Virus record (IMG/VR): IMGVR_UViG_3300035698_035310
Location: 186,001 to 250,000 of that record
Reading direction: 5' to 3' (one strand)
DNA: 64,000 bases
Shown here: positions 20,992 to 58,402 of the stretch, one piece after another
Layout: each line of letters begins with the position of its first letter
How positions within the stretch are numbered: position 1 is the stretch's first letter
Translations under genes and position numbers: made by a program
The notes under the pieces: model-generated
Seen by the model: only the letters and a program-made list of their open reading frames with translations
The model's database searches: none
Told to the model about the DNA's origin: nothing

Positions 20992-21101
20992 ATAAATACT
21001 ATTATAATAATGAATGTGTCGGGTTGTTTGCGCAACCCACGAAGTTCGAAGGATCGAAACTTCTAACACATTCAATAACTATTTATAGAAGGAATATCAC
21101 A
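20992..21101 (+). ncRNA. structured 5' leader (three-way junction) of the endonuclease gene
   Basis: P1 GAATGTGT 21012-19/ACACATTC 21066-73; P2 GGGTTG/CAACCC; P3 GAAGTTCGA/TCGAAACTTC; bounded by ATAAATA and TATTTATA. Confidence 0.6.
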
Positions 21102-22124
21102 ATGACTAATGCACTCACAACTGAAGATTTCATTCAACGTTCTATAGAAGCGCATAAGCCTTATCACGAACATTATGATTATAGCAAAGCGATCTATATC
21201 AAAACAACTAAAAAAATAACAATTACATGTAAGTTTCATGGCGACTTCGAAGTTATTGCTGCTACCCATCTAGGTGGTGCACATTGCAATAAGTGTAATA
21301 AAATGATTAATTCCATAATAAAAGAAGAAAATATTAGATTGCAAAAAATCGCTAACAATTATGAAATACAAGAAAAAGCAAAGGATTTCTACAACCGTGT
21401 TGATGAACGATTTGGTAGATTCAATTATAGTAAGAGTGTATTTGAAAATATGTCAACACCCATTATAATAAAATGCACTTGGCATGGCGAATTTGAACAA
21501 ACACCAAGTGTTCATTTAAGCCACCTTACAGGCTGTCCTGAGTGTAATCAGTTAGTTGCCAAGTGGCGTAACGATAGAACTACCCCAGCGTTCATTAAAA
21601 AGGCGAGAAAGGTGCATGGATGGCTATATGAATATGATAAAGTAGAATTTATTGATAATAAAACACCCATTACTATCATTTGCCCAGACCATGGTGTATT
21701 CAACCAAACACCATCGAATCACTTAAGGGGTGGAGGATGCCAAAAATGTGGCGGAAGGTTTGGGGCGAAAGAAACTGAATGGATAGAATATATGGAAGAA
21801 CGTATAGGTTATTCACTGGTCACCGACCACACTACCTTAAAGATGGCTGATGGCAAAGTATACTTCCCTGATGCATATGATCCTGACACTAAAACAGTAT
21901 ATGAATTCGATGGTGATTACTACCATGGCAATCCAAATAGATATGCACCTGATCAAACGAACTATACATCAAAGAAAACCATGGGTGAGCTATATGAAGC
22001 CACTCTCAAGAAAAAATCGGATTTAGAAACCAATGGCTATACTGTTTTGTCCATATGGGAAAGCGAATGGGATGCATTCAAGACGACTTTACCTGATAGA
22101 TTTCCTAATATCAAAGCAGCATAA
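21102..22124 (+). CDS. free-standing endonuclease: DUF723-like zinc-finger repeats plus a Vsr/PD-(D/E)xK-like catalytic domain
   Basis: Three YDYSK..Y.....I.I.C..HG.F.Q.P..HL.G..C..C repeats; PDAYD...YEFDGDYYHGNP...WE..W; GAAGGA RBS. Confidence 0.85.
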   Translation: MTNALTTEDFIQRSIEAHKPYHEHYDYSKAIYIKTTKKITITCKFHGDFEVIAATHLGGAHCNKCNKMINSIIKEENIRLQKIANNYEIQEKAKDFYNRVDERFGRFNYSKSVFENMSTPIIIKCTWHGEFEQTPSVHLSHLTGCPECNQLVAKWRNDRTTPAFIKKARKVHGWLYEYDKVEFIDNKTPITIICPDHGVFNQTPSNHLRGGGCQKCGGRFGAKETEWIEYMEERIGYSLVTDHTTLKMADGKVYFPDAYDPDTKTVYEFDGDYYHGNPNRYAPDQTNYTSKKTMGELYEATLKKKSDLETNGYTVLSIWESEWDAFKTTLPDRFPNIKAA

Positions 22125-22298
22125 AAAATAAGCCAAATAAAAAATTTATCGCGGACGAGAAGTCACCCTCATACCCGTACTGTAATAGTATAACGATCCT
22201 ATAAGTGTAAGGTAACAGCCACATGTGAATATATTCCTAGGAATTTTTTTCTATGTGTCATAGGAATATATACTCACGTATAAATTATAGGTAAAAAA

Positions 22299-22735
22299 TC
22301 ACAGTGTGACAGAATAAGTGCGCCAACTTTCATCACAGTGTGAATGAAACTGGAAAAATCATCACAGTGTGTGCATTTTGGAACACGTGTTTTGCTCACA
22401 GTGTGATATTTACCCTCACAGTGTGATTTTTTATCCTCACAGTGTGATATTTGGAACGCTTATCTGCTCACAGTGTGATATTTACCCTCACAGTGTGATT
22501 TTTTATCCTCACAGTGTGATATTTACCCTCACAGTGTGATATTTACCCTCACAGTGTGATTTTTTATCCTCACAGTGTGATATTTGGAACGCTTATCTGC
22601 TCACAGTGTGATTTTTTATCCTCACAGTGTGATATTTACCCTCACAGTGTGATTTTTTATCCTCACAGTGTGATATTTACCCTCACAGTGTGATTTTTTA
22701 TCCTCACAGTGTGATATTTGGAACACACACTGTGA
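22299..22735. repeat. array of 18 direct copies plus 1 inverted copy of the palindromic core TCACAGTGTG(A); candidate origin/iteron or protein-nucleation site
   Basis: Core starts at 22299, 22333, 22362, 22396, 22416, 22437, 22468, 22488, 22509, 22529, 22549, 22570, 22601, 22622, 22642, 22663, 22683, 22704; from 22396 onward spacings are 20/21/31 bp; located at the strand switch. Confidence 0.9.
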
Positions 22736-22857
22736 TGAATGTGAATTATTGAATAACTGTCTCCACCATGTTCCATAACTGTCTCCACACTAGATATAGT
22801 GGGTGTTAATGTGTAATATAGTTGCGCATTATAATTTCGTCATACACTCACAAAGTA

Positions 22858-22945
22858 GAACACTTATAGAACAAAGGTAGTTTTGAATTTTCCATAACAG
22901 ATGTTATGCGATTCTAACGGGGTAAACAGTGAACATAGGTGGAAC
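22858..22945 (+). promoter_or_regulatory. two alphaproteobacterial LexA-type boxes (GAAC-N7-GAAC)
   Basis: GAAC-ACTTATA-GAAC 22858-72; GAAC-ATAGGTG-GAAC 22931-45. Confidence 0.5.
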
Positions 22946-23031
22946 ATTTGTATCATACATAGTCCATATTGGTTTGATATGCATTATATATAATACATTG
23001 TCATAAGTGTTATACTGTGATATAATGTATC

Positions 23032-24891
23032 ATGGGATTAATACTGAATAGAATAGCGTATAGCAAAAATAATTGTTATAGGATAAATTACACATATAAT
23101 GGAGATATGGTGTCCAATGATGGATGGGTTGAGATGTCTTTATTTACGTTTGGCAGGCAAGTTGAACACAATTGGATAACTATGGATATGTTATTGGATA
23201 TGATCAACATTGATTATGAAGTATCTATAAGTGTGGCACAGTTATGAGAGATTTAACGGGTGAGATATTAAAAAGCATAGAGGAATTGATTAATACTACA
23301 TTACCGGATACACCGGAACGCAAAAGGGTTTCTGCACTTGGTGATGAAATACTTGATACATTAAGAATTCATCATGATATTGTAACGACGGTATATATAG
23401 TGAAGACGTTATATATAAAGAAAGATAATGGTAAGTATATTGTCATCAATAAAATGTTTAATGGTACAATATGTATATATAAGTATGACACTATTCTTGA
23501 CATAGTTAAGTTTGGTAAATTTGGATTAGATGAACTCATGAAAATGGATAACACATATGAAGATTCGGTTGTGGCACAGTTATGAGACTACTTAATGAAG
23601 ATCAATTGGAAGAACTTATGGATGCGATGATCAGGGATATGGTGGAGTATGAACTTACGGGTATTGAGGTATTGTTTTGGATGATAGAAGAAATACCACA
23701 ACTTGAAGCTATGGTATATATACGCAATGAATGAAGATGATCGATGGATGATACAGAAGACGATGATACGGAAGGTTCCATTACCGGTTAAGCGTCGTGT
23801 TATGCCGACAGTTATTGCGAATAACGTAGTTGGTGTATCACCGATGGCTCCACCGGTTAAGTCTATTCATACGATGCGGTTTGAGGATTACAGTGATTTA
23901 GAGATGGAAGAGGTTTTATACCGGTTGATTTTTGGCGGGACGGGACATTATTATCAGGTATGGTTATTCAATGAAGTTATTGATAATGATATGATGGTTA
24001 ACAGGGATGTATCAATTGGCAACGTTTGATGTTAGTAAGTTTAATAAGTTTAGGGTGCCAGTTGATAACCATAAAGGTATGTTACATTCTGGTATAAATG
24101 TGTATACGAACCCGTATATAAGATTGTTATCATCGCGCAATGCGCCGATTGAAGATTTAATAATAGTGATATTGAGAAATTCTATTGGTGTTGGTCAAGA
24201 AGCATTATTTAAACATATAAATCCACCGGTATTGGATAGCCATGTTACTATAGAACCCATAGGTGTTGATGAATAGGTCTTATGGGTTTCATAGGTCTTG
24301 AGCCATAGGTTTCATAGCATAGGTGCTATGGGTTTCATAGCATAGGTGCTATGGGTTTCATAGGAATAAAGCTATAGGAGTTATTGATGGCAATAAATGA
24401 TAGCAAATTACGCGGGGTGATTAAGTATACTATAGTTACGGATGATGGAGGGAAACCGATGACAAAGTTATTAGAAACTACTTGGGGAGAAGCCAAACGT
24501 GCATTAATGGAGGATCGTCGTTACACTGTCACTTATAAAGGATTTTCACATGTTGGTGACACTTATATAGATGCAATGTTACAATTAGTTCGATGGCGCA
24601 GTTTGGCGCGTGATGCTACTAATATGCATGAAGAACTGTTTGATATATTGAGTTCATATATAATTGAACGGGATGTATCGATAAGTGTCTTATAGATTAT
24701 TGATGATATTATTAGAATATCGTGCAGAGTTAGTATATCCATATACATATGAAGTATTAACACAAAGTAATACATCATATGTCCGTGTGACTAAAAAGCA
24801 GGAAGTTTTATGTGATATAATTGCGTCGCAGGAAAATTTATCGAAAATTATTTTTATAAATTGCGGAGAAATTTTAATTTCGGAGATTTGA
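23032..24891 (+). CDS. cluster of small AT-rich hypothetical genes with related C-termini (SISVAQL, SVVAQL, DVSIGNV, DVSISVL)
   Basis: ORFs 23032, 23244, 23703, 24007, 24384 and 24685; tails resemble those at 786-1530. Confidence 0.5.
24256..24380. repeat. degenerate tandem repeat of CATAGGTGCTATGGGTTTCATAG
   Basis: Exact ATAGGTGCTAT cores at 24319 and 24342 (23-bp period) with degenerate copies on both sides. Confidence 0.8.
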
Positions 24892-24897
24892 AAATCC

Positions 24898-24980
24898 GTT
24901 CTTGTTTTGTTCTGAATTTTTATTTGTTCTTGTTTTGTTCACGATCTGTTCTATGTTCTACTTTTGTTCTTGTTTTGTTC
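24898..24980. promoter_or_regulatory. array of five GTTC-N7-GTTC (alpha-LexA-type) boxes
   Basis: GTTC at 24898/24909, 24926/24937/24948 and 24955/24966/24977 (11-bp periodicity). Confidence 0.6.
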
Positions 24981-25134
24981 TAATTTCCTATTTTTCCTTT
25001 TTTCAAATATGACTGTTTCCTCCTTGACCCCAAGATACCAGATTTTGACCGTCCTGTCAAGTCTTTTCTTTAGTCCAGTTAGTTGATAGTTGGCACACTT
25101 ATTGCTGTCGCATGAATCGCGCCAAAATAAGTGC

Positions 25135-25253
25135 TTGACAAATTTTTTACTTGGGGGTATAGTTAAGATAGGGAGGGATGAGTGAAATTTAAAATCCAAA
25201 AAAAACTCATCCCTCCCTACGGTCAGTTTAGCACGTATTGAAAAGATGGTCAA
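25135..25253. promoter_or_regulatory. pair of face-to-face sigma70-type promoters, each initiating at AGGGAGGGATGAG
   Basis: Plus: TTGACA 25135, TATAGT 25158, motif 25169-82. Minus: TTGACC 25253-48, TAAACT 25230-25, motif 25219-06. Both have 17-bp spacers. Confidence 0.75.
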
Positions 25254-25528
25254 GTGTTTATTTCATTTTTTTGTATAATTGTGATATAGTGGGGCACTTA
25301 TATAAGGAGTGAATAGAAATTGAAAACGTGTGAATATTGTGAAAGGGAAGTGGTTAGTGAAATTCCCAAGGAGTCTGGCAAGGGTCGATGTTGTGGTATA
25401 GAATGTGGGCACCGTATAATATATGGTATATGGGATGAAGATTGCAGGCAGGTTATTGTTGAAGAAACTGATTGACATATAGAATGGGTGTGGTATGTAT
25501 AGATCATCATTAACCAAAGGAGATTATT

Positions 25529-25768
25529 ATGTCTAAAGCTATTATATCGCATCGCGCCATTTCTGATATGTGTATTGGCATATTGAAGAATCAATCCAAG
25601 ACGGCATTTACATTGGGCGAGTTCCAACAAGTGGCGGTTCCTATTATACAGACGGTGTTCCCTAACAACAACACTGTAAAGGATACGACACGTTATTCTT
25701 TACAGCAGTTACGCGACGCTGGTGTTGTTCGGTTTGTTGACGACGCTGGTATCTACAAAATTCTTTAA
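25529..25768 (+). CDS. stand-alone DpnI C-terminal-like winged-helix domain
   Basis: FTLGEF...VFPNNNTVKDTTRYSLQQLRDAGVVRFV...G.YK resembles the DpnI wH pattern FTL...F.KNNHIKEKIRQQLQILRD..IEF..G.Y. Confidence 0.65.
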   Translation: MSKAIISHRAISDMCIGILKNQSKTAFTLGEFQQVAVPIIQTVFPNNNTVKDTTRYSLQQLRDAGVVRFVDDAGIYKIL

Positions 25769-27864: not shown

Positions 27865-27906
27865 AAAAAATGCCTCACTGATCCTTTCACAGTGGGGCAT
27901 TTTTTT
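27865..27906 (+). terminator. intrinsic terminator
   Basis: AAAAAATGCCTCACTG / CAGTGGGGCATTTTTT. Confidence 0.75.
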
Positions 27907-27967
27907 GTCTTGACATATATGAATGATTGGGTTATCATGGTATACTTAACAATAAAGGGAATATTAC

Positions 27968-28501
27968 ATGAGTGATGATACGATAGACTTTCCGGGAACT
28001 ACGTCTAAAGCTCCGTCGAATGATCATGGTCCAATTATTGATTATAATACATTGATTCGTGCTGCTCATTTGAATGTTGTTAAAGACGCGATTCAAATCG
28101 TTTCGGATACTGGTCCTGCTGAATTCTTTAATATCAATATTACTTATGATTTGATGCACCCTGATTCGGTATCTGAAGAATGGTTGTGGAAGAAATATCC
28201 TGAGAAGATTACCATTATACTTAACAACCAATATGAAAACTTACACGTTGAGGACACTGGCTTTCGTGTCACCTTACATTTCGGTGGTTCTCCGGTTGCG
28301 TTGTTTGTTCCGTTTGATTCTATACTCAGTTATGTTGATATGGTTACGCGGGTTATGTTTTCGTTTGAAGACCCACATGCTAATGAACCAGTTGACAATC
28401 CATTTGAATCGGTTGATACGCCAGATATTAAATTGGTTCCTGATGCTGGCGCGGAAGTTATATCGTTGGACGCATTTAGGGATAAGAATAAAAAGGATTG
28501 A
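27968..28501 (+). CDS. sspB: alphaproteobacterial-type ClpXP adaptor SspB
   Basis: IDY..L...A...VV; KKYPEKITIILNNQY..L.V...GFRVTLHFGG....L.VPFDSI...VD; C-terminal ClpX-binding-type AEVISLDAFR. Confidence 0.85.
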   Translation: MSDDTIDFPGTTSKAPSNDHGPIIDYNTLIRAAHLNVVKDAIQIVSDTGPAEFFNINITYDLMHPDSVSEEWLWKKYPEKITIILNNQYENLHVEDTGFRVTLHFGGSPVALFVPFDSILSYVDMVTRVMFSFEDPHANEPVDNPFESVDTPDIKLVPDAGAEVISLDAFRDKNKKD

Positions 28502-30199: not shown

Positions 30200-30210
30200 A
30201 GGATAATATC

Positions 30211-35821: not shown

Positions 35822-35895
35822 GGGGGCATAGCTCAGTGGTAGAGCAGTGGGTTCTAAACCCTTTGTCGGGAGTTCGACTCTCCCTGCCCTCGCCA
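35822..35895 (+). tRNA. tRNA with CUA anticodon (amber suppressor), Trp-like body
   Basis: Acceptor GGGGGCA/TGCCCTC, D arm GCTC/GAGC, anticodon loop TT-CTA-AA, T arm GGGAG-TTCGACT-CTCCC, G73 and encoded CCA; own TTGACA promoter at 35785. Confidence 0.92.
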
Positions 35896-36997: not shown

Positions 36998-39184
36998 ATG
37001 CAAATCAAAACAGAAAATCGAGAAGTTGGGCGTTCCGGCACTTCAAACGAACGGACGTTTAACATCGATATGACTGCCAAGGCATTTAAGATTCTATCCG
37101 ACGGATTGTATTCGGATAAAATTCTTGCTGTTGTTCGTGAACTTTCTTGTAATGCCAAGGATTCACATATCGACGCTGGCAAAAATGACGTGCCTTTCGA
37201 AATTCACCTACCGAATTCACTTGAGCCGTGGTTCGCGGTTACTGATTACGGACTTGGGTTATCACCTGACGATGTATTGGAAATGTATTCCACTTATTTT
37301 GCTTCAACCAAAACGGGTTCAAACGATGTAACGGGGTGTCTTGGACTTGGTTCTAAATCGCCTTTTGCTTATACCGATTCGTTTTCAGTTGAAACACGTT
37401 GGAATGGCACACTTACTGTATTTTCATGTTTCTATAACGAGGCAGGTATCCCCTCAATCGTTATTTTGGGTGACGAAGACGGAATGCCTACCGACGAAGT
37501 GAACGGCGTTACCGTTAAAATGGCTGTAAACGATGGTGACATGCGCGAATTCGCACAAAAGGCAATGAAGGCACTTGATCGCTTTGATCCTGCCCCTATC
37601 GTTACTGGTAACACTGATTATGAAATTGTTACTAAGACTTATACGGTTGAAGGCAAAGGCTGGAAGATGCTTGAACGTGAAAGTTCATATGGTGAAAGCA
37701 AAATCCATGCTATCCAAGGCAATGTAACATATCCAATTAGTTCACAATCATTAGGCGACTTGACAAGCAATCAAGATGCAATTATGGGATTGACAGTTGA
37801 TTTGTTCTTTGATATCGGCGAGTTGGACGTTGCGGCAAACCGCGAGGCGTTGGGTTATGATGAAGCAACGATTAAAAATATCAAGGCTAAACTTGATGCC
37901 GTATCGACTGAAATTGCCCCATTGTTTCAGGATAAATTTAAGGATTGTAAAACACTTTGGGATGCGCGTTTGTTGTTCAAAGAAGTGATCAATCCTTTGA
38001 CATCTGGCTTGCAACGGATTCTATCTGACAACAATGTTGGGTTGAAATGGAAAAAGCAATCACTATCTGATTCGTTCAAATTGGATCGCGATGATTTTCC
38101 TAACGTTCAGATTGTATCATTCCAAAAGAATACACGCGGTGGACGTGGGCAAACTGCGGAATGGAGTTATAACGGTGATATTAAATTCCCCGCCAGTTCC
38201 GATATTCTGTTTTTCTATGACGATGTTGGCAATGGTTCGCATAGCCGAGTGACTCATTTTATGGAAACAAATGGTGACTCTGTTCGTTATCAGCATATGT
38301 TCAAAACCGACGATAAAAAAATGATGAAAAAGATTTCTAAGGCGTTGGGTAATGTTACTATTCAACCTGTAAGCAATCTTGAAAAACGCCCCAAGGCTGT
38401 TCGCCAAGCGCGACGAGTTACATCAAAGGTTTTGGAATATGTTGGACGCGCCCATGATCGCCGTGATAGTTGGAATCCTACTGATCTGGATTTAACGACT
38501 GGTGGTGTTTATGTTATGATTGATCGCTTTAAGGTATATGATTCCAATAATGGTTCAGGACGTGAACGTGAAGATTTTAACACCATTGTCGATTTGGCGA
38601 AAGAACATAAAATCGTTGACTTGACTAACAAGATCGTTTATGGAATTCGTAAAGGTGATGTTGATAAATTGAAAGATGATTCTGGTTGGGTTAATCTTTT
38701 CGACCTGATCCGCGACAAACTTACGGTTGCGGTTAAAAAAGAAAAGGTGGCGCAAGTTATGGCTGACCGTTATGCCTATCACCAGTTTTCAAATGATTTA
38801 TCATCGTTCGTTAATGATATGGATGATACTGATTTGGCAAAGGATTCAGTTATTGGAATATTCAAACGCGCACATGAATATCTTTCAAACCGTGATTCAT
38901 CTAAGGCACAAGCGATTTCAAGTGTTGCGGATAGCGTAGGATTTACGTTAAAATCTGCCAAGCCAAAACACGATCTTGGGAAACTTTGGGACGCTGTTAA
39001 AAATAAGTATCCATTATTGAAACTTGTTTCTGACAGTGATTTGCGCGGCGGTTATTACAACAATCGCGACAACTCTATCAGTGAAAATAACCATGCGGCA
39101 TTGACTGATTATATCGCGATGGTTGACGCAAAAGACGCAGTGCCAGAAAAGCGTAAAATCCTTACGTTGGCCTCGGCGGCATAA
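36998..39184 (+). CDS. rIIA: rIIA protein (GHKL ATPase N-terminus)
   Basis: LSDGLYSDKILAVVRELSCNAKDSH...TDYGLG...STK...GCLGLGSKSPFAYT; directly upstream of rIIB. Confidence 0.9.
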   Translation: MQIKTENREVGRSGTSNERTFNIDMTAKAFKILSDGLYSDKILAVVRELSCNAKDSHIDAGKNDVPFEIHLPNSLEPWFAVTDYGLGLSPDDVLEMYSTYFASTKTGSNDVTGCLGLGSKSPFAYTDSFSVETRWNGTLTVFSCFYNEAGIPSIVILGDEDGMPTDEVNGVTVKMAVNDGDMREFAQKAMKALDRFDPAPIVTGNTDYEIVTKTYTVEGKGWKMLERESSYGESKIHAIQGNVTYPISSQSLGDLTSNQDAIMGLTVDLFFDIGELDVAANREALGYDEATIKNIKAKLDAVSTEIAPLFQDKFKDCKTLWDARLLFKEVINPLTSGLQRILSDNNVGLKWKKQSLSDSFKLDRDDFPNVQIVSFQKNTRGGRGQTAEWSYNGDIKFPASSDILFFYDDVGNGSHSRVTHFMETNGDSVRYQHMFKTDDKKMMKKISKALGNVTIQPVSNLEKRPKAVRQARRVTSKVLEYVGRAHDRRDSWNPTDLDLTTGGVYVMIDRFKVYDSNNGSGREREDFNTIVDLAKEHKIVDLTNKIVYGIRKGDVDKLKDDSGWVNLFDLIRDKLTVAVKKEKVAQVMADRYAYHQFSNDLSSFVNDMDDTDLAKDSVIGIFKRAHEYLSNRDSSKAQAISSVADSVGFTLKSAKPKHDLGKLWDAVKNKYPLLKLVSDSDLRGGYYNNRDNSISENNHAALTDYIAMVDAKDAVPEKRKILTLASAA

Positions 39185-39340
39185 GAAACTCCTACCTAGC
39201 CCGTAGGTGGCAGGGTTGAACGGTGATTGACTTCTTCTGTTTAATCCTGCCAAACTAATTTGAAATGAGTGCTTGACAATATAACAAATGGTGGTAATAT
39301 TCATTATCACATTCGGAAACCAACTAGGAGACTAAAACTT

Positions 39341-40492
39341 ATGAAAACGATTCAAGCCGCAATTATCGCCCAAAATTCAATCACACTTATGATTGACGGG
39401 CAAACTACGCCTATCGCCTCTTCGCATACAAACTATGAAGAAATTCGTGGACTTGCTGCCGCTGGCAACTATGCACCAATTGCATCATTGCTTGATATGG
39501 TTCAGGTTATTAACGACTTTGGTAAAGGACGCGTTACCGTTGAAAACGGTGAAGTTCTTTATGATGGTAAGCCTACCCATAACGCGGTGACTTCGCGTAT
39601 CCTTCAAATGGTTGAAGAAGGTTTGGAAGTTTCACCAATGGTTGCATTCCTTGATAACCTTATGGATAACCCTTCATTCCGTTCCGTTCAACAGTTATAC
39701 GGTTTCTTGGAAGTGAACGACCTTCCGATCACGGAAGACGGTTTCTTTCTTGCCTATAAAATGTGCGCCGAGGTTAATGGTAAATTGACTGATATTCGCA
39801 CGCAAACGTTTGATTATAGCGTTGGCGCAAAACCTGCCGAAATGCCACGTAACGAAGTGAACGAAGACCCTGATCAAACTTGTTCTTCTGGTTTGCACGT
39901 ATGCGCCCAAGGTTATCTTGGTTCATACAGTTCTGGCGAACATACGATTTTGGTTAAAGTTAATCCTGCCGATGTTGTTGCAGTTCCGACTGACTACAAT
40001 AACGCCAAAATGCGGGTAAGCAAACATGAAACCGTTTGTAAGGTTACTGCGCGAACTCGCGGTGCTGTATATACCAGTGCGGTTTATACCCCTTCGGCGG
40101 ATTCAAAAAGCACACTGGTAAATGGCGATGATTTGCTTACGCTGGATGAAGCAGTTGACGTTCTTGGGCTTAAGGGTGCTAAAAATCCAATTGCCGCACT
40201 ACGTAAGCGCCTATCGCGTGCAAAGCTGACTTCTAACCCTAAACTCAAGTCGGTTTTCAAAGATGGTGTTGAAATGATTCAAATCATCCAAACGGAGGCC
40301 GACGATGTTGAAGTTGCTGACGATTCGGTTATGACTCACGTTGATGCAATCGCATACTTTGCCAAGCAAAACAAAGCCAATGGCAAGGCACAACCAGCCG
40401 ACCCGAAAGCGGCATTGCGTAAAATGCTTAATCGTGAATCTGCTTGCAAGCGCGTTTACGTTGATGGTGTTGAGATGATCAAAATTCTTTAA
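39341..40492 (+). CDS. rIIB: rIIB protein with a duplicated C-terminal extension
   Basis: FLDNLMDNPS.RSV.QLYGFL....LPITEDG.FLAYK...MPRNEV.EDP.QTCS.GLHV...VKVNPADVV.VP.DYNNAKMR. Confidence 0.92.
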   Translation: MKTIQAAIIAQNSITLMIDGQTTPIASSHTNYEEIRGLAAAGNYAPIASLLDMVQVINDFGKGRVTVENGEVLYDGKPTHNAVTSRILQMVEEGLEVSPMVAFLDNLMDNPSFRSVQQLYGFLEVNDLPITEDGFFLAYKMCAEVNGKLTDIRTQTFDYSVGAKPAEMPRNEVNEDPDQTCSSGLHVCAQGYLGSYSSGEHTILVKVNPADVVAVPTDYNNAKMRVSKHETVCKVTARTRGAVYTSAVYTPSADSKSTLVNGDDLLTLDEAVDVLGLKGAKNPIAALRKRLSRAKLTSNPKLKSVFKDGVEMIQIIQTEADDVEVADDSVMTHVDAIAYFAKQNKANGKAQPADPKAALRKMLNRESACKRVYVDGVEMIKIL

Positions 40493-43558: not shown

Positions 43559-43564
43559 TACAAT

Positions 43565-44860: not shown

Positions 44861-45420
44861 TAGGGAGCGTGGCTGAAATGTAGCAAATCAGGTGTGTCAC
44901 GTAAGTTAATCTACTGAAAATTTGTTGCCCCTGCCTAAGTGGGTTAATTGGGTTTTATAGAAAAGTAGTATATAATATGTAGGGAATTTGCGAAAGAACG
45001 TAAGTGGAGCCGATACAAGTGATAGGAAATTAGACCTTGACGTGGACGCTAAGAAGTTTACAATCTGAATTTCAAAACAATTCATCGTGGTGATACTTAA
45101 CACCAGTAGAACAAATAACAGTAAGGAACGATGGAGCCGGATATCCATGCTATAAAAAACCGGCATACTTATTCGCCCGAATGGGCAAACAGTTTTGGAT
45201 TAAATGGGCGTAGCTCATTAGCGGTGAAGACGTAAGTGCTTCTTTATTAAGAAACGCATAAGTGACATTCGCGATGTCATGGGGTGAAATCCCTCAATCC
45301 AAATTTAACTATACGCAGGGCAATCCCGTAAGACGTAAGTGTTTCCAAATCACAAGACCTCCTTTCGTTAAATATTGTGATTGAATGAAGCCCCATCAGC
45401 ATCCAGCGGTGGGGTTTTGT
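44860..45420 (+). ncRNA. structured RNA, unit C, with a tRNA-like T-loop subdomain and terminator
   Basis: ATTCGCCCGAATGGGCA (45171) is nearly identical to 43571; 8-bp helix 45194-201/45296-303 enclosing GGGGTGAAATCCC; terminator-like hairpin 45390-45420; boundaries uncertain. Confidence 0.5.
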
Positions 45421-46102
45421 TTTTCCAATCATGCTCCCACATAACGACAAGATTATAACCCGAATCTTTAATAAGTGTTTCTTTTTTAAGTGTATTCTCA
45501 TATAGATGTTTGAACGGTTGTTTATTTGATGGATTTAGTTTGGTATGATCGGTGGTATTTGGATTACCATGCCAATAATCGCCGTGAAATTCATAAACCG
45601 TATTAGTCGTTGGATTATAACCATCCACTATGAATTGATTTATTTTAACTTGGCGATGATTTCTATCATTTGGAAGACCGATTGCATCAAGCCATTTTGT
45701 TTCTGATTTAGAAACATTATTGGTGCATTTTGCACAACCGCGACCTGATATATGATCTGTTGGGCGTTGCGTAAAGATACCATGTTTTTTGCATATTATA
45801 TTAATATTTGTTCGTTTATTAACATATATAGATTGTGAATAGTCATATTTACCACTGTGTGCAATATTGGATAAGATAATAAATTCATTCAATGTTCTTG
45901 TTTGTGTGATATTGCAACACTTATTGCATCCAATGCTACGTATATGATCGGCTGCACGTTGTTCAAATATACCATGATCGTCGCATATTATTTTTATTTT
46001 AGAATGTGAATGACTATATTCAACTAATGAATAATCATATACATCACCGTGAACGGCGATAGCTTCTTGTATGAATTTAGTGGTGGTTTTTCTTCTTGAC
46101 AT
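45368..46102 (-). CDS. free-standing endonuclease (DUF723-like repeats plus Vsr-like domain)
   Basis: YDYS.VEY....KIKIIC..HG.FEQ...DH...GC..C twice; VDGY...YEFHGDYWHGNP...MWEHDW. Confidence 0.85.
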   Translation of the reverse strand: MSRRKTTTKFIQEAIAVHGDVYDYSLVEYSHSHSKIKIICDDHGIFEQRAADHIRSIGCNKCCNITQTRTLNEFIILSNIAHSGKYDYSQSIYVNKRTNINIICKKHGIFTQRPTDHISGRGCAKCTNNVSKSETKWLDAIGLPNDRNHRQVKINQFIVDGYNPTTNTVYEFHGDYWHGNPNTTDHTKLNPSNKQPFKHLYENTLKKETLIKDSGYNLVVMWEHDWKNKTPPLDADGASFNHNI

Positions 46103-46207
46103 GTGTTATCCTTCCGGGTTATAAATACGTGTGGCGGTTGGATTACCTTCCGGTGTCCAATGTGATGAATGTTCGTAGCAAACATCACGCCGTCATTTTT
46201 ATTTATC
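46103..46207 (-). ncRNA. structured 5' leader of the endonuclease gene
   Basis: GATAAATA...GTGATG/CATCAC hairpin, ACC-GGAA-GGT GNRA hairpin, TATTTATA, GGAAGGA RBS; aligns with 58299-58402. Confidence 0.65.
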
Positions 46208-46673
46208 ATTATTTCCTTGACATATAATATCAAACTGGTATTATAATAAAAACCACATAGGAGATTTAACAATGAAAAAGTTCTGGATTATTTTTAGCAC
46301 TACGTCTGACCCAAGACGATGTTCGAAACCAACACGAGAGGCGAAAAAGCATTATGATAAAGAAAAAGCCTTGACTGAGTTGAACAGACTTGCTAAACAA
46401 GAACGAGGCAGAGAATTTATTTTGTTGGAATCTATTTGTTCTGCTGTTGTAACAGATGTTGCAATCACGCCGCATACCTGATGCAAATATTTTGGATCAT
46501 ATTTAACTTATCAGGCAATCCAGAACGGGAATCAAAACCCGCCTATAAGTTAAAGCAATACACCGATGAACAAAAAGCATTGGCAGAATTGGAACGCTTA
46601 TCAAAGTTTTATACTGGACAAAAATATGTCCTAATGGAAACCGTTGGTTATGCCGACAAAGATGGAGTTAAAA

Positions 46674-47700: not shown

Positions 47701-47715
47701 TCTATATGGGTTCTA

Positions 47716-48366
47716 TTAGAATGTCATGCAATTTTCTATGACTCGAAGTTGAACATTTCCTAAACTGCGATGTCTGGTTTGTTTTAGGTTGAGTTTGAAT
47801 TTAATATCATCACTTTCTTCTAAGACTTTAGCAAACAGTTCGGGTTGCATTGTTAATCCAATATACAATAACCGCATAGTGCTTAATATCTTTCTTATTG
47901 GTTTGTCGAGTACAACTATTTCCTTGCCGGTAATAAGTGCGATAAACTTATCAAGGTTCATACAACCACGCACTGAGTTGCATTCGGAACAAGCCATAGC
48001 AAAGTTATGCTTGAAATTAGAACCACCTTTTGTCCTTGCAACAACATGTTCAACCGTGGCGCGGTTAGTGTCGTGGTGTGGAATCGCATCACCGTCGTCC
48101 AGTTTTGGATACCACATTGGGTCACCACAATAGCAGCATCTATGATTTTGTGCTTCTAATAATTTGATATTGCGGCGGCGGAGAAATCGAGTATTTCTAC
48201 CGCGTTTATTTTTACGCGTATTTTCTTTAGTTTTTTCTACGTTGCCACCATTAGCCGCATCATTCTCGAGACGTAGCGCACGCACTTCTTCGAGAGACAT
48301 GCCTTTTTCTCGCTCACGTTTGTGTTTTCGTTTTTCGGTTCGTCTGAGTTTTCCTAATGGTGTCAT
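47716..48366 (-). CDS. HNH endonuclease
   Basis: CCYCG...ATVEHVV....GGSN...N.AMAC.ECN..RG. Confidence 0.85.
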   Translation of the reverse strand: MTPLGKLRRTEKRKHKREREKGMSLEEVRALRLENDAANGGNVEKTKENTRKNKRGRNTRFLRRRNIKLLEAQNHRCCYCGDPMWYPKLDDGDAIPHHDTNRATVEHVVARTKGGSNFKHNFAMACSECNSVRGCMNLDKFIALITGKEIVVLDKPIRKILSTMRLLYIGLTMQPELFAKVLEESDDIKFKLNLKQTRHRSLGNVQLRVIENCMTF

Positions 48367-48419
48367 TACAAATCCTTTCAGTGGGGATAGTATAGAACCA
48401 TCCCCACTGATGTCAAGGG

Positions 48420-52374: not shown

Positions 52375-52399
52375 CTATGGTTTTTTGATAAATACTTAT

Positions 52400-53134
52400 A
52401 TGGTAAAACGCAAAACAACAGAACAGTTTATACAAGAATCGACTGCAATTCATGGTGATGTATATGATTATTCATTGACCAATTATATCAATAGACGTAC
52501 CAAAGTAAAAATAATATGCACCGTTCATGGTATATATGAACAAACTGCGGGAAATCATTTATATCAAAAACAAGGTTGCTCAAAATGTGCCGGTGATAAA
52601 CAGGCATCGAGACAGCGAAAATCACTATCACAGTTTATTCAAGAGGCAACAATAGTTCACGATTCTTTATATGATTATTCGTTGGTGGATTACAATCATA
52701 CTGATATAAAAGTAAAAATAATATGCCCAACGCATGATATATTTAAGCAAACGCCGCATGATCATTTACATGGAAAAGGTTGCCCTAAATGCGTTCATAC
52801 TATATCAAAAGGTGAAACTAACTGGCTTAATCGCATTGGTTTACCAGACGATACACAACATAGACAAGTGCGCTTGCCTATGAATAATAATAAAAATCGA
52901 AGGGTTGATGGTTATGATCCATTAACCAATACTGTTTATGAATTTCATGGTGATTACTGGCATGGCAACCCCGCACGTTTTAATCTCGATGATATAAACC
53001 CAACCATTAAAAAACCATACAGACAACTCTATGAAGCCACCTTAACCAAGGAAGTGCTTATCAAAGATTCCGGTTATAATCTTGTAGTTATGTGGGAGCA
53101 TGATTGGAAAGCTCATCCCTCCCTAACAGTATAA
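52400..53134 (+). CDS. free-standing endonuclease (DUF723-like repeats plus Vsr-like domain)
   Basis: Paralog of 45368 and 57561; GATAAATA at 52387 just before the ATG, no structured leader. Confidence 0.85.
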   Translation: MVKRKTTEQFIQESTAIHGDVYDYSLTNYINRRTKVKIICTVHGIYEQTAGNHLYQKQGCSKCAGDKQASRQRKSLSQFIQEATIVHDSLYDYSLVDYNHTDIKVKIICPTHDIFKQTPHDHLHGKGCPKCVHTISKGETNWLNRIGLPDDTQHRQVRLPMNNNKNRRVDGYDPLTNTVYEFHGDYWHGNPARFNLDDINPTIKKPYRQLYEATLTKEVLIKDSGYNLVVMWEHDWKAHPSLTV

Positions 53135-55814
53135 TATTAAATTACTCGTAAAAAAGCAATGATTATTTTTATAATATGACGTAAATTACTTGTTGACATT
53201 GGTTCAGTTAGTTTGTAATATCTTTTTATCAGAACATCATACATTCACAAATGAAAGATTGAAAATAATGCCAACATATCGAAAAAGAATACTCATATCA
53301 GAATTCGCTGAACCAGAAATATTTTTTGAATATAAAGGTGTGAAAATATATCATACTTATACAGACAATGCTGAAACACTTTCATCATTGAATTTTGACC
53401 GTGATTGTAAAAGCAAGCGGTTGTTTACCACGAACAAAAAATGCGGCATGGTTCCCATGTTTGATGTTTATTTTGAAAACGATCTTCGTGTATGGGACAA
53501 ACAATCAAAAAATGAAACCCGTGGGGTGTTTAACATTCAAAACATTCCAAATCCTAAAGGGCATCATATTACGACTCATGCTGGTATTTCAAGAGTTCTT
53601 ATGGAAGCAATTGACACCGGTTGGATTAAAACTAATAAAACACCAGAGTGTATTCACGATTGTCATATACTCGCACATCCAAAATAATCACATCAAGGGG
53701 AGAAGTAAAACCTTTTCCCCTTGACTAACTTTAATAAGTGTGCTATGAATATATCATAATTGAAAAGGATACGAAAATGCATAACGCAGATGTTCTACAT
53801 AATGCCTTACTTACCGCAACGATGATGATGCGTAAAGGTCGTGCGTTTAAGATTGTTAGATATTCACCCAAACAAGAAACGGTTTATTATAGACCATTTT
53901 TCGCCAACGACCTGACTGACATACGCACTGACGAGTTGGATCACTTGTGCGACGATGATTCGATTCAGTTATTCACCACAACGCAACTCGAAACACAATA
54001 AGGAAAACCGATGCAAACTTATACCACCCCACGCTTAACGAACATAAGTGATACATTTCGCGCCGACGTTGCTGCGGGTGAATTAACTACATGGTGTGAA
54101 GAAAACAGTGTAGGTGCTTGGTTCATCCACGCCGTTGATCATGTGGAGTTTGAATTCCCCACAGATGCCAAACAATTTATGATGAAGTTTTGGGAGCTAG
54201 ACTCCTAAAAATCCCCCCGCATGTTCCTACGCAAGTAATGAAGACACTCCATGCGGGGGTTCTTTTTGTTTTGGCGCACCCAAAAAAAGCTCATCCCTCC
54301 CTATCAGCATAATAGCAGGGTCAATAGATAAGTCAACCATTATTATTAAAAATAAACCATTGACAACGGCTTTTGTATTTTATATAATATATAGATTGAA
54401 AAGGAGAATTGAAATGTCGCGCACTTATCGTAAGCTTCCTTATTGGTCAAATGATCCAAAATTAACACGTGAGCGAGGCTCCAAATGGACTGGCATGCGT
54501 GTTTTTGTTGCTCCTAATGGAAATGTATTCGGTTGGGATGATGAAGCCCTACGTAAAAAATCATCTAAACGTCGCACCAATCGCATTCGCCGTTTGATGG
54601 GCAAGAAAGAAATTGTTCTTGCCGTTGCTGCTATGGCAGAAGACGCAATGGAAGACCTCAACGAAATGATGGATTGGGAAGCCGAAGAGTATTGCGATAC
54701 ATATTACGACGAGTATGAATTGTCTGAATGGGCTGATTGGAAACAGCGTGAAATTGATGATCAAGCAATTGAAGAATATTATTTAAATGAAGACCCATAT
54801 TATTACGATTTTGATTATTAAGGGTTGACATCACTATTTGATTTCGTTATGATTCATCCAAGCTAACAACACAACATAAATCTTGAAAGGATTTAACTAT
54901 GGCTAATAAATTCACAATCACACGCACTTATGATCGCGATGAAATTATTGACACAGTTAATAAATCCATTGAACAAAACGGAACATATCATCAAATCAAA
55001 TCGTTGCTTGATACTTTATATACTGGATGGTTTTTTGATATAGAAACGGCTTGCGAAGTTGAATTGATTTTACGCGAAAAGGGCGATTTTATTCGCGAGT
55101 TTTATCAAGAACGGCTAGACGAAATGAATGCTGCCAAGAAATTTGACTTGGTATAACTATTCACTTAAGATAACAACACAACATAAATCTTGAAAGGATT
55201 TAACAATGTCTAAAACAATTTCCCGCGTAGACTTCATTGAACTTATGGCAGATGCTGCAATGCGACTTCCAGTAACACGCAAGCGCAAGCCAGAGGATGA
55301 CCCATCTGAATTCATCGACTTGTTTGATTATGATGCAATGTCAAACGAATGGTCGAAAGGTGTTCAGTGGCTTCGTGGCGTTGGTGATAGTGGCACTTAT
55401 AAAGTTCCGACACCCGATGGAACATTCAAGCGCGTTCCAATGCGAACTATTGCTGAAATGCCAGCGTTCATTCAAGAGATTGTTACCGAGGCACAAACTC
55501 ATTTGAATATCGATTCGATTGTCGAGATCGCTTAACTAATCTTTAATCATTCGGTGCGATACTTCTTTATGAAAGGAGTATCGCACATGATTGATTTTTT
55601 ATTATACTATTCACTTGGTGGGGTTGTTTGGTGTGTATGGACTGAAGTTCTACACCGGAAAGGATTCTTAGCCAGACTAGGGTTGATTGTATTCATCCCT
55701 TTTGTTGCAATCACTTTAATGTTGGAATCAATACGAAATTAGTTATTGACTCTTTTATTAAAAAATGGTACACTTAGTTATACACTTATTATTAACATTT
55801 GAAAAGGAATTGTA

Positions 55815-56315
55815 ATGAGACGTTCATTAAAATTAGTATTAGCCTCGATGTTGATCGTGGCGCTATCCGGTTGTGTTACACAAGGGAGTGGCGGCGGCGT
55901 TGGCACTAAAGGTTTGCTTGGCGGTCTTCTAGGGGCTGGCGTTGGCGGATATGCCGGTTCAAATATCGGCGGTGGTAAAGGCAAACTTGCTGCTACTGCA
56001 ATCGGCGTTCTTGCTGGTGCATGGCTTGGAAATAACGTTGGAAACACGCTTGACGACGTTGATCGGTTGAAATCGCAAAAGGTAACACAACGCGCACTTG
56101 AACGAAATCCGCAAGGTTCTCCAGCGGTTTGGTCGAACCCCACCAATCGAACCTCGGGAACCACGACACCGACTCGAACGTATAAGTCACGAAATAATGA
56201 AGATTGTCGAACATATAAACAATCAATAGTTATCAATGATAAAATTGAAACAAAACATGGAACTGCATGTAGAATAAATGGGCTTTGGGTAGAACAACAA
56301 CCGCCCGGCTCATAA
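55815..56315 (+). CDS. glycine-zipper lipoprotein resembling the Rickettsia 17-kDa surface antigen family
   Basis: Lipobox LSG-C20; GGLLGAGVGG...G.GKLAATAIG.L.GA..G..VG..LD..D...W.NP....SG...P.R.....C R.Y.....G.ACR. Confidence 0.85.
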   Translation: MRRSLKLVLASMLIVALSGCVTQGSGGGVGTKGLLGGLLGAGVGGYAGSNIGGGKGKLAATAIGVLAGAWLGNNVGNTLDDVDRLKSQKVTQRALERNPQGSPAVWSNPTNRTSGTTTPTRTYKSRNNEDCRTYKQSIVINDKIETKHGTACRINGLWVEQQPPGS

Positions 56316-56644
56316 TATTAAAGATAAAACCAATCTTTTTTTCTATCATCTTTTAAATATTTAATAGTTGACAAACTGAAATAATTTGGTATAGTTAAAT
56401 CATCAACAAACACAAACAACGAAAGAAGAGGCTTAAGACGATGGGTAAAACATTTTCGCGTGATCCAGATAGTGACAATTATGCAGGTGGACATATGAAG
56501 GCAAATCGCCAAGAAACAAAATTCCGCCGACAAAAATCGGTTCGGAAAGATGCATTGCTAGACGAAAGCATGCAACCTGATGAACCAACTTATGGCAAAC
56601 ACACGGATGATTTTAGCCCACGGAAAGACGGCTGGTAATCAATT

Positions 56645-56676
56645 AAAAAGGGAAGCAGAAATGCTTCCCTTTTTTT
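56645..56676 (+). terminator. intrinsic terminator
   Basis: AAAAAGGGAAGCA-GAAA-TGCTTCCCTTTTT. Confidence 0.9.
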
Positions 56677-57560
56677 ATGCTTGACACTGGTTTAGTTAAT
56701 TGCTATGTTAAATCGTCGTTGCCCAAGAAAGCGGGTTGATAAAGACTTGACTGACACTACGAAGTGTTCTATTGATTAATCATAACAACAAAAAGGAACC
56801 GAGTATGACTACAGCAGAAGTAATCCCTTTCGCCGTTCTTAAAGCCAAGATCGATGACCGTGACATTACACCAGAAGCAATTGAAGAAGCATCGTTTTCA
56901 CCCGAGGTTGAAGCTGATGTTTTGACAAATTTGCTGGTATCCGGTTTATACAAAGGCATGACGAATTCTGGCATTGACACCCTTTCGGATGTAAATCAAG
57001 AATTACTTGGTGTTATATATGAAATGGTTGGCGCGGTTGTTGATCGCAAATATAAATTGTTTAATGAATTCAATGCAATACGTGATATTCAAGCCGAAAA
57101 GGGCGATGTTCAACTTGAAACAAATGTTTTTCTAAAACCAAAACAGGAGACAACTGATGCCTAAAGCCGTAACGCAATATGAAACATTCGACGGAAAAGT
57201 ATTCTCCGACGAAAATGCCGCTGAACAATGGGAACGCAATACAAATAAAGCAAACGCAATCATATCGATGTTTCCGAACAACGGTCATCTTTCATCTGGC
57301 GATTTCTATCAGTTATCAAGAGATTTGATTAGCACCGCGAGAATTAAACTTGCCGATGCTTTAACTCGTGGCGGCTTCGATGACGAAATGATTAAAGCAT
57401 TTCGTGATAATACCAGCGATGTAATCGGACGCTATCTCGACGACGGCGGTTCAACATATTATAAAGCATGGTGGTTATTTTCTTGTATTGACAATCAAGG
57501 GCGGATGTTCAATCAACCGTTCTTTGCCAATAATCCAAGAGAAATAAGAGATGAAGTTTC

Positions 57561-58298
57561 CTATTGATTCTTCCAATCATTTTCCCATATCGTGACAAGA
57601 TTATAGCCGTGAGATTTAATAAGAGTCTCACGGTTCATAGTCTTTTGATATAACTCGCCGAATGATTTTTTATTATTGGTGTTGATATGTTCGGGATTGT
57701 GTGTATTAGGATTCCCATGCCAATAATCACCATAGAACTCATATATGGTATTTGTGTCAGGGTCATAACCGTCTGGATATATCCATTGATTATTTAATAT
57801 TAAAGTTCGTCGCCTATAATCATTTGTATCAGGTAATCCAATATGATCAAGCCACGATTTTTCCATATATGATTTATTCTGTATAGTTAATGGTCGCAAC
57901 ATAATGGCGCACTTATTACATCCATGATTTAAATGTGCTGATGGTTCTTGTTGAAATATTCCATGTTCAGGGCAAATGATATTCACCTTTGTATGCGTGT
58001 TATGATAATCAACTAATGAATAATTATATTTATCGCCATGTTTTATCAACGATTTTTGTATAAATTTTAATGTAGTTCCCCGTATTTTATCTGAATTATT
58101 TTTTATTGCACATTTAATACAGCCTTTTCCACTACTAGTGTGCGAACAAGGCGTCTGTTCAAATATTCCATGAGTTGTGCATATTATTTTAACTTTGGTA
58201 TGGGCGGCAATATATATAGACAATGAATAGTCATATCTATCACCATGAATGGCGATAGCATCTTGAATGAATTTTGAGGTAGTTTTTCTTCTTGACAT
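57561..58298 (-). CDS. free-standing endonuclease (DUF723-like repeats plus Vsr-like domain)
   Basis: Same N-terminus MSRRKTT as 45368; PDGYD...YEFYGDYWHGNP...IWENDW. Confidence 0.85.
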   Translation of the reverse strand: MSRRKTTSKFIQDAIAIHGDRYDYSLSIYIAAHTKVKIICTTHGIFEQTPCSHTSSGKGCIKCAIKNNSDKIRGTTLKFIQKSLIKHGDKYNYSLVDYHNTHTKVNIICPEHGIFQQEPSAHLNHGCNKCAIMLRPLTIQNKSYMEKSWLDHIGLPDTNDYRRRTLILNNQWIYPDGYDPDTNTIYEFYGDYWHGNPNTHNPEHINTNNKKSFGELYQKTMNRETLIKSHGYNLVTIWENDWKNQ

Positions 58299-58402
58299 GT
58301 GATATCCTTCCGGTTATAAATACATTGGCGGTAGGACTTACCTTCCGGTGTCCATGTGATACATACTTGAAATATGTATCACACCGCTCCTATCTATTTA
58401 TC
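58299..58402 (-). ncRNA. structured 5' leader of the endonuclease gene
   Basis: Perfect 10-bp hairpin GTGATACATA/TATGTATCAC (58356-82), ACC-GGAA-GGT hairpin, TATTTATA, GGAAGGA RBS. Confidence 0.65.

Follow-up and report, generated by a model that had tools for sequence, protein, structure and literature searches.

A conserved module with features of antisense-type control in front of homing-endonuclease genes in a salt-lake giant phage and its uncultured relatives

Several known systems offer points of comparison for the module described here. In IS10/Tn10, the promoters pIN and pOUT face each other and the structured antisense RNA-OUT pairs through a loop with the ribosome-binding region of RNA-IN, while the outward promoter can also drive neighbouring genes. 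In the T4 family, homing-endonuclease genes such as I-TevI, segB and Aeh1 mobE are preceded by a late promoter and a hairpin that sequesters the ribosome-binding site (PMC2988022), and all T4 nuclease genes except segD are co-oriented with their neighbours. The T4-like cyanophage S-PM2 produces CfrI, an RNA of about 225 nt that runs antisense to a homing-endonuclease gene and to psbA (PMC2984593). The PeSL cassettes of T4-type phages are short repeated units, combining an early promoter with a terminator hairpin, that flank variable genes in plastic regions and are tied to orphan genes in general (PMC2839356, PMC4122927). Finally, in type I toxin-antitoxin loci in which the antitoxin RNA pairs through repeats, such as par/Fst of pAD1 and tisB/IstR-1, a short repeat transcribed in the opposite direction gives an RNA complementary to the initiation or standby region of a harmful gene.

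We analysed a window of 64,000 nucleotides (positions 186,001 to 250,000 of IMG/VR record IMGVR_UViG_3300035698_035310), part of a 359-kb genome of an uncultured phage from a salt-lake metagenome. A sequence-only reading had proposed that three dispersed endonuclease genes in this window share a leader containing a three-way RNA junction, with a T4-type late promoter on the opposite strand, and that a fourth paralogue lacks it. This observation was confirmed in all its sequence statements, and it proved to be larger than first described. The three copies, named E21, E46 and E58 after their approximate positions (in kb) in the window, each contain an ATAAATA box, a three-way junction, TATTTATA (reading TATAAATA on the other strand), a Shine-Dalgarno sequence and an ATG. 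The features of the three copies and of the fourth paralogue are as follows.

20944-20972, - strand: sigma-70-like promoter (TTGACA-17-TATACT, 11 of 12 matches, TG) just beyond E21, pointing at the divergent gene 20915-20619
20992-20998, + strand: E21 sense box ATAAATA (late-promoter-like), preceded by A
21011-21074, + strand: E21 three-way junction, with P1 21011-21019/21066-21074, P2 21021-21027/21032-21038 and P3 21041-21049/21054-21063 (MFE -27.3 kcal/mol); the P3 loop region GAAGGA (21048-21053) repeats the Shine-Dalgarno sequence
21080-21087: TATTTATA on the + strand; on the - strand the E21 antisense box TATAAATA, facing the junction
21088-21104, + strand: E21 translation initiation region, with the Shine-Dalgarno sequence GAAGGAA at 21088-21094 and ATG at 21102
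21102-22124, + strand: nuclease gene, 340 aa, DUF723 / phrog_559 / phrog_681
45368-46102, - strand: nuclease gene, 244 aa (phrog_559/681), a lone - strand gene next to + strand neighbours
46100-46117, - strand: E46 translation initiation region CCGGAAGGATAACACATG, ATG at 46102; predicted duplex with its own antisense RNA -21.6 kcal/mol
46120-46127: TATTTATA on the - strand (46127-46120); on the + strand the E46 antisense box TATAAATA
46133-46191, - strand: E46 three-way junction, with P1 46191-46189/46135-46133, P2 46188-46179/46171-46162 and P3 46160-46152/46147-46138; the antisense fold is more stable (-26.0 against -19.0 kcal/mol)
46146-46153, - strand: E46 mimic of the translation initiation region, CCGGAAGG at the P3 tip, identical to 46117-46110
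46200-46206, - strand: E46 sense box ATAAATA (46206-46200), preceded by G
46217-46244, + strand: sigma-70-like promoter (TTGACA-16-TATTAT, 11 of 12 matches, TG) beyond E46, pointing at the + strand gene that starts at 46272
52388-53134, + strand: fourth paralogue without the module, with box ATAAATA at 52388-52394, then CTTAT, then ATG at 52400 (GATAAATA only 5 nt before the ATG); co-oriented with its neighbours
57561-58298, - strand: nuclease gene, 245 aa (phrog_681/559), a lone - strand gene between + strand genes
58296-58314, - strand: E58 translation initiation region ACCGGAAGGATATCACATG, ATG at 58298; predicted duplex -17.9 kcal/mol
58315-58322: TATTTATA on the - strand (58322-58315); on the + strand the E58 antisense box TATAAATA
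58328-58387, - strand: E58 three-way junction, with P1 58387-58383/58332-58328, P2 58382-58371/58367-58356 and P3 58353-58347/58342-58334
58341-58361, - strand: E58 mimics of the translation initiation region; ACCGGAAGG (58349-58341) equals 58314-58306, and TATCACATG (58361-58353) equals 58304-58296, which includes the start codon
58395-58401, - strand: E58 sense box ATAAATA (58401-58395), preceded by G

To test whether the junction exceeds chance, we first folded the cores against dinucleotide shuffles, which gave z = -5.3 for E21, -4.9 for E58 and -1.6 for E46, so that E46 is weak on its own. A regular-expression search of the whole genome then identified 10 such elements, including the three in the window, each located 11-27 nt upstream of a nuclease-like ORF. 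More than 50 further copies occur in other uncultured phage contigs. On a 53-sequence alignment made with a covariance model, 88.4% of cells pair, in comparison with 66.6% in shuffles, and 299 cells are doubly changed, in comparison with 91 in shuffles (0 of 500 shuffles reach the observed value in either case). The covariation score was 0.50, against 0.10 or less for slid partners, and every P2 and P3 pair, together with 3 of 4 P1 pairs, shows compensatory changes. Although the alignment is fitted to the model, so that these counts lean towards it, covariation strongly supports the junction.

Next, we wanted to determine whether the module is linked to DUF723/Vsr-like nucleases, as the sequence-only reading had suggested. 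This link was not supported. The module precedes at least three unrelated nuclease families in this genome, including GIY-YIG, HNH-like and DUF723-like genes, and two copies elsewhere precede TnpB-like genes, whereas no match was found at the loci of 73 distant homologues of the window's nuclease. A conserved structured unit does, however, accompany nuclease genes: it is absent from 76 related loci that lack the nuclease, and it lies inside a 1.5-kb segment specific to the nuclease-bearing phage. In a search against Rfam only tRNA matched at gathering thresholds, and nothing fell on the elements at E values up to 5.

Comparison of each copy with its own gene revealed that the P3 loop copies the translation initiation region. 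The best match between each core and its own initiation region scores 7.1, against 5.3 for permuted partners (z=13.4, 0 of 10,000 permutations), and where this match falls in the P3 half of the core (33 of 52 elements) it covers positions -14 to -4. The match is copy-specific, although the mimic in E21 is only a generic GAAGGA, and the result was replicated on 11 new metagenome contigs (z=5.2, 1 of 20,000). Since P3 copies the ribosome-binding region, only the opposite-strand RNA is complementary to it. The predicted duplex of the antisense RNA with its own initiation region is -14.3 kcal/mol, compared with -10.1 for non-cognate pairs (z=-12.9), the cognate partner ranks first of 52 in 16 cases, and the anti-initiation-region segment is 62% unpaired, against 38% overall. 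In contrast, two controls gave no signal: complementarity between the sense leader and its own initiation region is no better than for non-cognate pairs (z=-0.7), and the far-side flank shows none against the core (z=-0.5 and -0.9). Against an antisense reading, mismatches between the mimic and the initiation region are not biased towards G·U-tolerated changes (16 against 26).

To probe which strand carries the structure, we compared the folds of the two strands and the non-Watson-Crick positions in helices. The antisense fold is more stable in 37 of 52 elements (p=0.002). Single non-Watson-Crick positions inside helices comprise 77 A·C, 31 G·U and 18 other (p=1e-5), so that A·C, which reads as G·U on the opposite strand, is tolerated about 2.5 times more often than G·U; the new set gives 17 against 8. 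However, this A·C excess disappears where both neighbours are co-directional with the nuclease (9 against 9, n=8), and may therefore partly reflect strand-biased mutation.

T4-type late promoters consist of a (T/N)ATAAATA box about 6 nt upstream of the transcription start. In this genome ATAAATA is enriched 5.6-fold in intergenic DNA, and 67 of the 90 intergenic boxes lie within 150 nt upstream of a same-strand gene start, typically 20-40 nt from the start codon. ATAAATA or NATAAATA is the predicted late promoter in phage CBB (also reported there for GAP32) and in T4-like cyanophages (PMC5259590, PMC2984593). We therefore consider that the ATAAATA at the 5' end is best read as a late-promoter box, and that the flanking inverted repeat is better read as two face-to-face promoters than as an RNA stem. 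Both boxes are present in every element, but they were part of the search patterns, so their invariance is partly due to how copies were found. The spacing from the antisense box to the closing stem peaks at 4-5 nt. Searches of the genome with T4 gp55, phrog_234 and phrog_12791 detected no gp55-type late sigma factor, although one of these searches matched nothing in any control genome either and a divergent sigma factor could be missed.

Taken together, these results tentatively favour, as the best of the available readings but at less than even confidence, a portable control module for selfish nuclease genes. In this view two T4-type late promoters, NATAAATA on the gene strand and TATAAATA on the opposite strand, face each other about 70-80 bp apart across DNA that encodes the junction. 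The gene-strand promoter would give the nuclease mRNA, with the junction at or near its 5' end, whereas the opposite promoter would give an RNA that starts at the closing stem, carries the mirror-image junction and does not overlap the ribosome-binding site of the nuclease. This antisense RNA would display, in a hairpin loop, 7-13 nt complementary to the Shine-Dalgarno sequence and spacer, and is proposed to pair with that region and with the fully complementary leader, so holding nuclease translation down; promoter collision may add to this. Complementarity to the leader itself would, however, compete with binding at the initiation region. The neighbouring gene is divergent in 31 of 47 cases, and there the same transcript would run on into that gene, so that the insertion would also supply an outward promoter. 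The analysis itself establishes the anatomy, the covariation, the match between loop and ribosome-binding site, the link to nuclease genes and the distribution; that the boxes are promoters, that both RNAs exist and that their pairing represses the nuclease is inferred from sequence, since no RNA run was listed for this phage or for a related one. The sequence-only reading had offered a cis-regulatory RNA that travels with the nuclease, an antisense control unit or an RNA cofactor, and its interpretation is thus partly supported, the antisense unit being the option that fits best.

Other explanations seem less likely, though two of them retain some support. The module could be a sense-strand 5' leader only, in which the junction protects the mRNA from 5'-end-dependent decay, the Shine-Dalgarno copy in the P3 loop acts as a ribosome standby or loading site, and TATTTATA is an AU-rich enhancer, a processing site, or pairs with ATAAATA in read-through transcripts. 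The sense box lies 0-12 nt from the closing stem, which would place the junction at or near the 5' end, other nuclease genes in this genome have a box followed by a single hairpin, G·U pairs (31) still exceed each of the other mismatch types, and T4 relatives carry a hairpin just upstream of the ribosome-binding site of a homing-endonuclease gene (seg43(25), PMC2988022). Yet a standby site that binds the constant 16S rRNA tail would not need spacer and flank bases to co-vary copy by copy, A·C outnumbers G·U, and the final A of TATTTATA is kept but has no pairing partner, because the sense box is mostly preceded by G in this genome. We regard this reading as unlikely, and as slightly less likely still the possibility that the module is mainly a DNA-level promoter and recombination cassette similar to the PeSL elements, repeated promoter-plus-stem-loop units that insulate transcription around an insertion, restart the neighbouring gene and give homology for shuffling genes, the RNA fold and the mimic being secondary.

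In favour of such a cassette, the same module fronts unrelated nuclease families, which implies module swapping, outward sigma-70-like promoters lie directly beyond two of the three window copies, the nucleases are mostly lone genes in reverse orientation among + strand genes, and the module sits in indel-rich regions that also hold tRNA genes. However, P2 sequences are almost wholly different between copies, leaving little homology for recombination, compensatory changes and wobble tolerance point to selection at the RNA level, no terminator-like site was found at any window copy, and the covariation between loop and ribosome-binding site is left unexplained. It is very unlikely that the junction is an RNA partner of the nuclease, such as a guide or cofactor, or a small ribozyme that shapes the 5' end of the mRNA. 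Two copies do precede TnpB-like genes, and lariat-capping ribozymes occur upstream of eukaryotic homing-endonuclease ORFs, but one fold serves unrelated enzyme families, junction sequences differ between the two subfamilies with no conserved core, Rfam gave no match even at lenient thresholds, and the variable loop tracks the ribosome-binding site, not a DNA target.

We found no prior description of this conserved module of about 90 bases. It shares with IS10 a mobile nuclease-type gene, facing promoters (here at the level of motifs only), of which the outward one, likewise inferred here, can also drive neighbouring genes, and complementarity of the predicted antisense RNA to the initiation region through an exposed loop. 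In IS10, however, the antisense RNA physically overlaps the initiation region and forms a single hairpin, whereas here complementarity comes from a separate copy of that region inside the element, the fold is a three-way junction and the promoters are phage late-type boxes. As in the T4 family, a late-promoter box lies immediately upstream of the nuclease gene together with a structured leader, and expression is presumably restricted in time or amount, but the Shine-Dalgarno sequence lies 0-27 nt beyond the element rather than inside the structure, and most of the nuclease genes are reversed relative to their neighbours. CfrI offers a precedent for an antisense RNA opposite a homing-endonuclease gene in a phage group with NATAAATA late promoters, but it is not a repeated module and no mimic of the initiation region is known to have been reported for it. 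In comparison with PeSLs, this module has two late boxes and a junction without a U-tract, and is tied specifically to nuclease genes. In comparison with type I toxin-antitoxin loci, the protein is a 220-390-aa DNA nuclease and not a small membrane peptide, and the context is that of phage late genes and not a plasmid or chromosomal addiction locus.

It is possible, though still doubtful, that these elements represent a widespread, undescribed class of governor module that selfish nuclease genes of the GIY-YIG, HNH, DUF723-like and TnpB types carry with them in large T4-like phages. In this case an antisense RNA launched from a mirror-image late promoter would display, on its three-way junction, a loop that co-evolves with the ribosome-binding site of the nuclease and silences it, and where the neighbour is divergent the same transcript would restart that gene, which would make the insertion nearly harmless. 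The copy-specific match between the P3 loop and the ribosome-binding site is unusually directly open to experiment through compensatory mutations. The module could serve as a compact, programmable translational repressor design. It adds a candidate RNA family that Rfam lacks, and would also mark mobile nuclease cassettes in metagenomes. Homing endonucleases must be expressed enough to spread, yet little enough not to damage their phage, and a single portable module shared by unrelated nuclease families would be a general answer to the question, largely unanswered outside the T4 model, of how free-standing ones manage this.

The DNA of the 359,044-bp viral contig that contains the window (bases 186001-250000; 36% GC) is found almost only in salt-lake metagenome runs. 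The phage encodes homologues of RIIA (728 aa) and RIIB (407 aa), located at 36998-40492 (+) in the window, which place it in the broad T4-like group. However, DNA searches and RIIA protein searches against cultured phages found no close relative, the best protein match being only about 30% identical, and gave no annotated or transcriptome-backed relative. We therefore consider this to be an uncultured giant phage of the wider T4-like world. The window also encodes a tRNA with anticodon CUA (35822-35895, +), which is amber-reading, is labelled Pyl by ARAGORN and has an Rfam tRNA score of 65 bits. Since TAG is used as a normal stop in 55 of 515 crude gene calls, general recoding is not evident.

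Inspection of the three leaders in the window, E21, E46 and E58 (upstream of the nuclease genes starting at 21102, 46102 and 58298, respectively), confirmed every sequence statement made in the sequence-only reading. Each site consists of ATAAATA, a closing stem (P1) with two hairpins inside it (P2 and P3), TATTTATA, a purine-rich Shine-Dalgarno sequence and ATG. Minimum-free-energy folds give the three-way junction in all three sites and, when compared with dinucleotide shuffles, the cores score z = -5.3 (E21), -4.9 (E58) and -1.6 (E46). An ATG-TAT-TTA-TAA mini-ORF upstream of the gene occurs only in E58, and the possibility of an upstream ORF was therefore dropped. The fourth paralogue, at 52400, has only GATAAATA, five bases before its ATG. 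Several genes, including two nuclease paralogues, likewise have the ATAAATA box only 3-8 nt before the ATG (window 52388-52402, +; genome positions 28633, 25821, 96282, 99826, 106778 and 41392). If the box is a late promoter, these would be leaderless or nearly leaderless mRNAs. Other nuclease genes in this genome show different or simpler arrangements, as follows.

Genome 345740-345862 (-): nuclease-like gene with the ATAAATA box followed by a single long hairpin and no second box, a simpler relative of the module.
Genome 23576-23669 (-): as above, box and single long hairpin without a second box.
Genome 180089-180191 (+): as above, box and single long hairpin without a second box.
Window 48367-48418 (-), upstream of the HNH gene 47716-48366: a different nuclease control design, in which TTGACA-17-TATACT lies inside a 10-bp inverted repeat (CAGTGGGGAT...ATCCCCACTG) that ends just before the Shine-Dalgarno sequence.

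To determine how widespread the element is, we searched the whole genome for ATAAATA followed, after 50-110 bases, by TATTTATA. This gave ten such elements, each located 11-27 nt upstream of an ORF of 224-340 aa. These ORFs fall into at least three unrelated groups, namely GIY-YIG with NUMOD3, Cys-rich HNH-like proteins (phrog_1271, phrog_23051) and the DUF723 / phrog_559 / phrog_681 group that includes the window's genes. A covariance model built from eight copies found nothing else in the genome. Since it misses the two 96-nt copies (E21 and the one at genome position 313969), counts of copies are lower bounds. As the sequence-only reading had suggested that the leader might be linked to DUF723/Vsr-like nucleases, we searched with the model beside 73 distant homologues of the window's nuclease in IMG/VR. 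No hit was obtained, and linkage to that protein family is rejected. In contrast, pattern scans followed by the model found the element nine times in an 82-kb contig, in about 33 more distinct viral contigs and in further metagenome contigs, giving roughly 60 copies in all. In those contigs the downstream ORFs are again homing endonucleases of many PHROG families, together with two TnpB-like transposase genes (phrog_506, phrog_12300; sequences L180, 1722-2930, -, and L201, 10345-11553, +). Module-bearing and other nuclease genes are also embedded in tRNA gene clusters at 20-30 kb (L001, L017) and 126 kb (L012) of the genome, with 11 tRNA matches at gathering score or above in L017 and 2 in L012, which recalls segB in T4. 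The module therefore goes with mobile nuclease genes in general within a group of phages, and not with one protein family. The interpretation offered in the sequence-only reading is thus only partly supported, since the module does accompany nuclease genes but does not follow the family proposed.

The element travels with the nuclease. A conserved neighbouring gene of one module-bearing phage has 78 related loci in IMG/VR. Only the two loci from that same phage type carry the module. In comparison with the nearest relative (82% protein identity), a 1.5-kb segment is replaced by an unrelated 0.5-kb segment. The 1.5-kb segment holds the reversed nuclease gene, the module and a divergent 124-aa Cys-rich ORF (sequence L335, 3348-3722, +), which may be cargo of the cassette. 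The divergent neighbours in the window (46272-46481, 58480-59325 and 20619-20915) have no PHROG match. Alignment of salt-lake contigs to window positions 56500-60500 gave fragmentary coverage and no empty-site variant.

We next assessed the structure on 53 elements aligned to the model. In this alignment 88.4% of cells pair, compared with 66.6% in shuffles, and 299 cells carry changes on both sides, compared with 91 in shuffles (0 of 500 shuffles reach the observed value). The covariation score is 0.50, against at most 0.10 when partners are slid by one to three columns. All ten P2 pairs, three of four P1 pairs and all five P3 pairs show compensatory changes. The alignment is fitted to the model, which favours it, but P2 sequences are visibly unrelated between copies yet always self-complementary. 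The ATAAATA/TATTTAT pairing never varies and hence gives no evidence for an RNA stem.

ATAAATA is 5.6-fold denser in intergenic than in coding DNA and, of the 90 intergenic boxes, 67 lie within 150 nt upstream of a same-strand gene start, usually 20-40 nt from the start codon. The same motif is the predicted late promoter of the giant phage CBB, and is reported there for GAP32 as well (PMC5259590), whilst NATAAATA plays that role in T4-like cyanophages (PMC2984593). The element is thus best read as two late-promoter boxes facing each other, although this reading is inference, since no gp55-like sigma factor was detected in searches of the genome and searches for sequencing runs listed only DNA runs or none.

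A new feature of the element is a copy of the ribosome-binding region in P3. In nearly every element the P3 loop repeats the gene's own Shine-Dalgarno sequence together with its flanking and spacer bases, as in E46 (CCGGAAGG), in E58 (ACCGGAAGG, plus TATCACATG, which includes the start codon) and elsewhere (GGATAGTATA, AGGAATGTAAA and GGAGCAGAT). The best match of each core to its own initiation region scores 7.1, compared with 5.3 for permuted partners (z=13.4, 0 of 10,000). In the 33 of 52 elements whose best match falls in the P3 half of the core, it covers positions -14 to -4, and the result repeats on eleven newly retrieved contigs (z=5.2). The far-side flank shows no such relation. TGTCAAG, which is seen upstream of several copies, turned out to be the reverse of a TTGACA -35 box on the other strand and is not a duplicated gene start. 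The sense leader is not complementary to the initiation region (z=-0.7). In energy terms, the opposite-strand RNA would pair with its own initiation region at -14.3 kcal/mol, against -10.1 for non-cognate pairs (z=-12.9). However, a test for G·U-tolerant mismatches between the mimic and the initiation region went the wrong way or was uninformative (16 against 26). A constant partner such as 16S rRNA cannot explain copy-specific covariation, but a partner made from the same locus can.

A second new feature is strand asymmetry. The reverse-complement fold is more stable in 37 of 52 elements. Among single non-Watson-Crick positions inside helices, A·C, which corresponds to G·U on the opposite RNA, occurs 77 times, G·U 31 times and all other types 18 times, and the new set gives 17 A·C against 8 G·U. 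Where both neighbours run the same way as the nuclease, however, the counts are 9 against 9, and strand-biased mutation may therefore contribute to the A·C excess.

With respect to context, most genes in this genome are on the + strand, and most module-bearing nuclease genes are lone - strand genes among them. Across all elements, the gene on the far side is divergent in 31 of 47 cases and co-directional in 16. The opposite-strand RNA, if made, would therefore sometimes be a leader for a neighbour and sometimes be purely antisense. Sigma-70-like promoters with 11 of 12 matches point away from the nuclease just beyond two of the three window copies, and no terminator-like site was found at any window copy.

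Searches of Rfam at gathering and lenient thresholds gave nothing on the elements. Full-text searches on homing endonucleases with antisense RNAs or late promoters found only T4-family reviews, a review that covers CfrI, and the PeSL papers. The type of control that we propose has precedents, since it would work like IS10 RNA-OUT or like type I antitoxin RNAs that pair through repeats. Alternative explanations are a sense-only leader that stabilizes the mRNA or loads ribosomes, a PeSL-like promoter and recombination cassette, and an RNA cofactor or ribozyme. With regard to the last of these, a hammerhead-like core was considered, but on inspection by eye the junction sequences do not fit.

From these results we tentatively propose a mechanism, in the knowledge that the layout, the covariation and the copy-specific match to the initiation region come directly from the sequence analysis, whereas the activity of the boxes as promoters, the existence of both RNAs and any effect on translation are inferred. 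In this view there are two face-to-face late promoters, and the nuclease mRNA starts with the junction. The opposite RNA, read from the TATAAATA strand, would start at the closing stem, with a box-to-stem spacing that peaks at 4-5 nt. It would show an anti-ribosome-binding-site loop that pairs with the nuclease's initiation region and with the leader, and this would limit translation of the nuclease. Where the neighbour is divergent, the same RNA would restart that gene.
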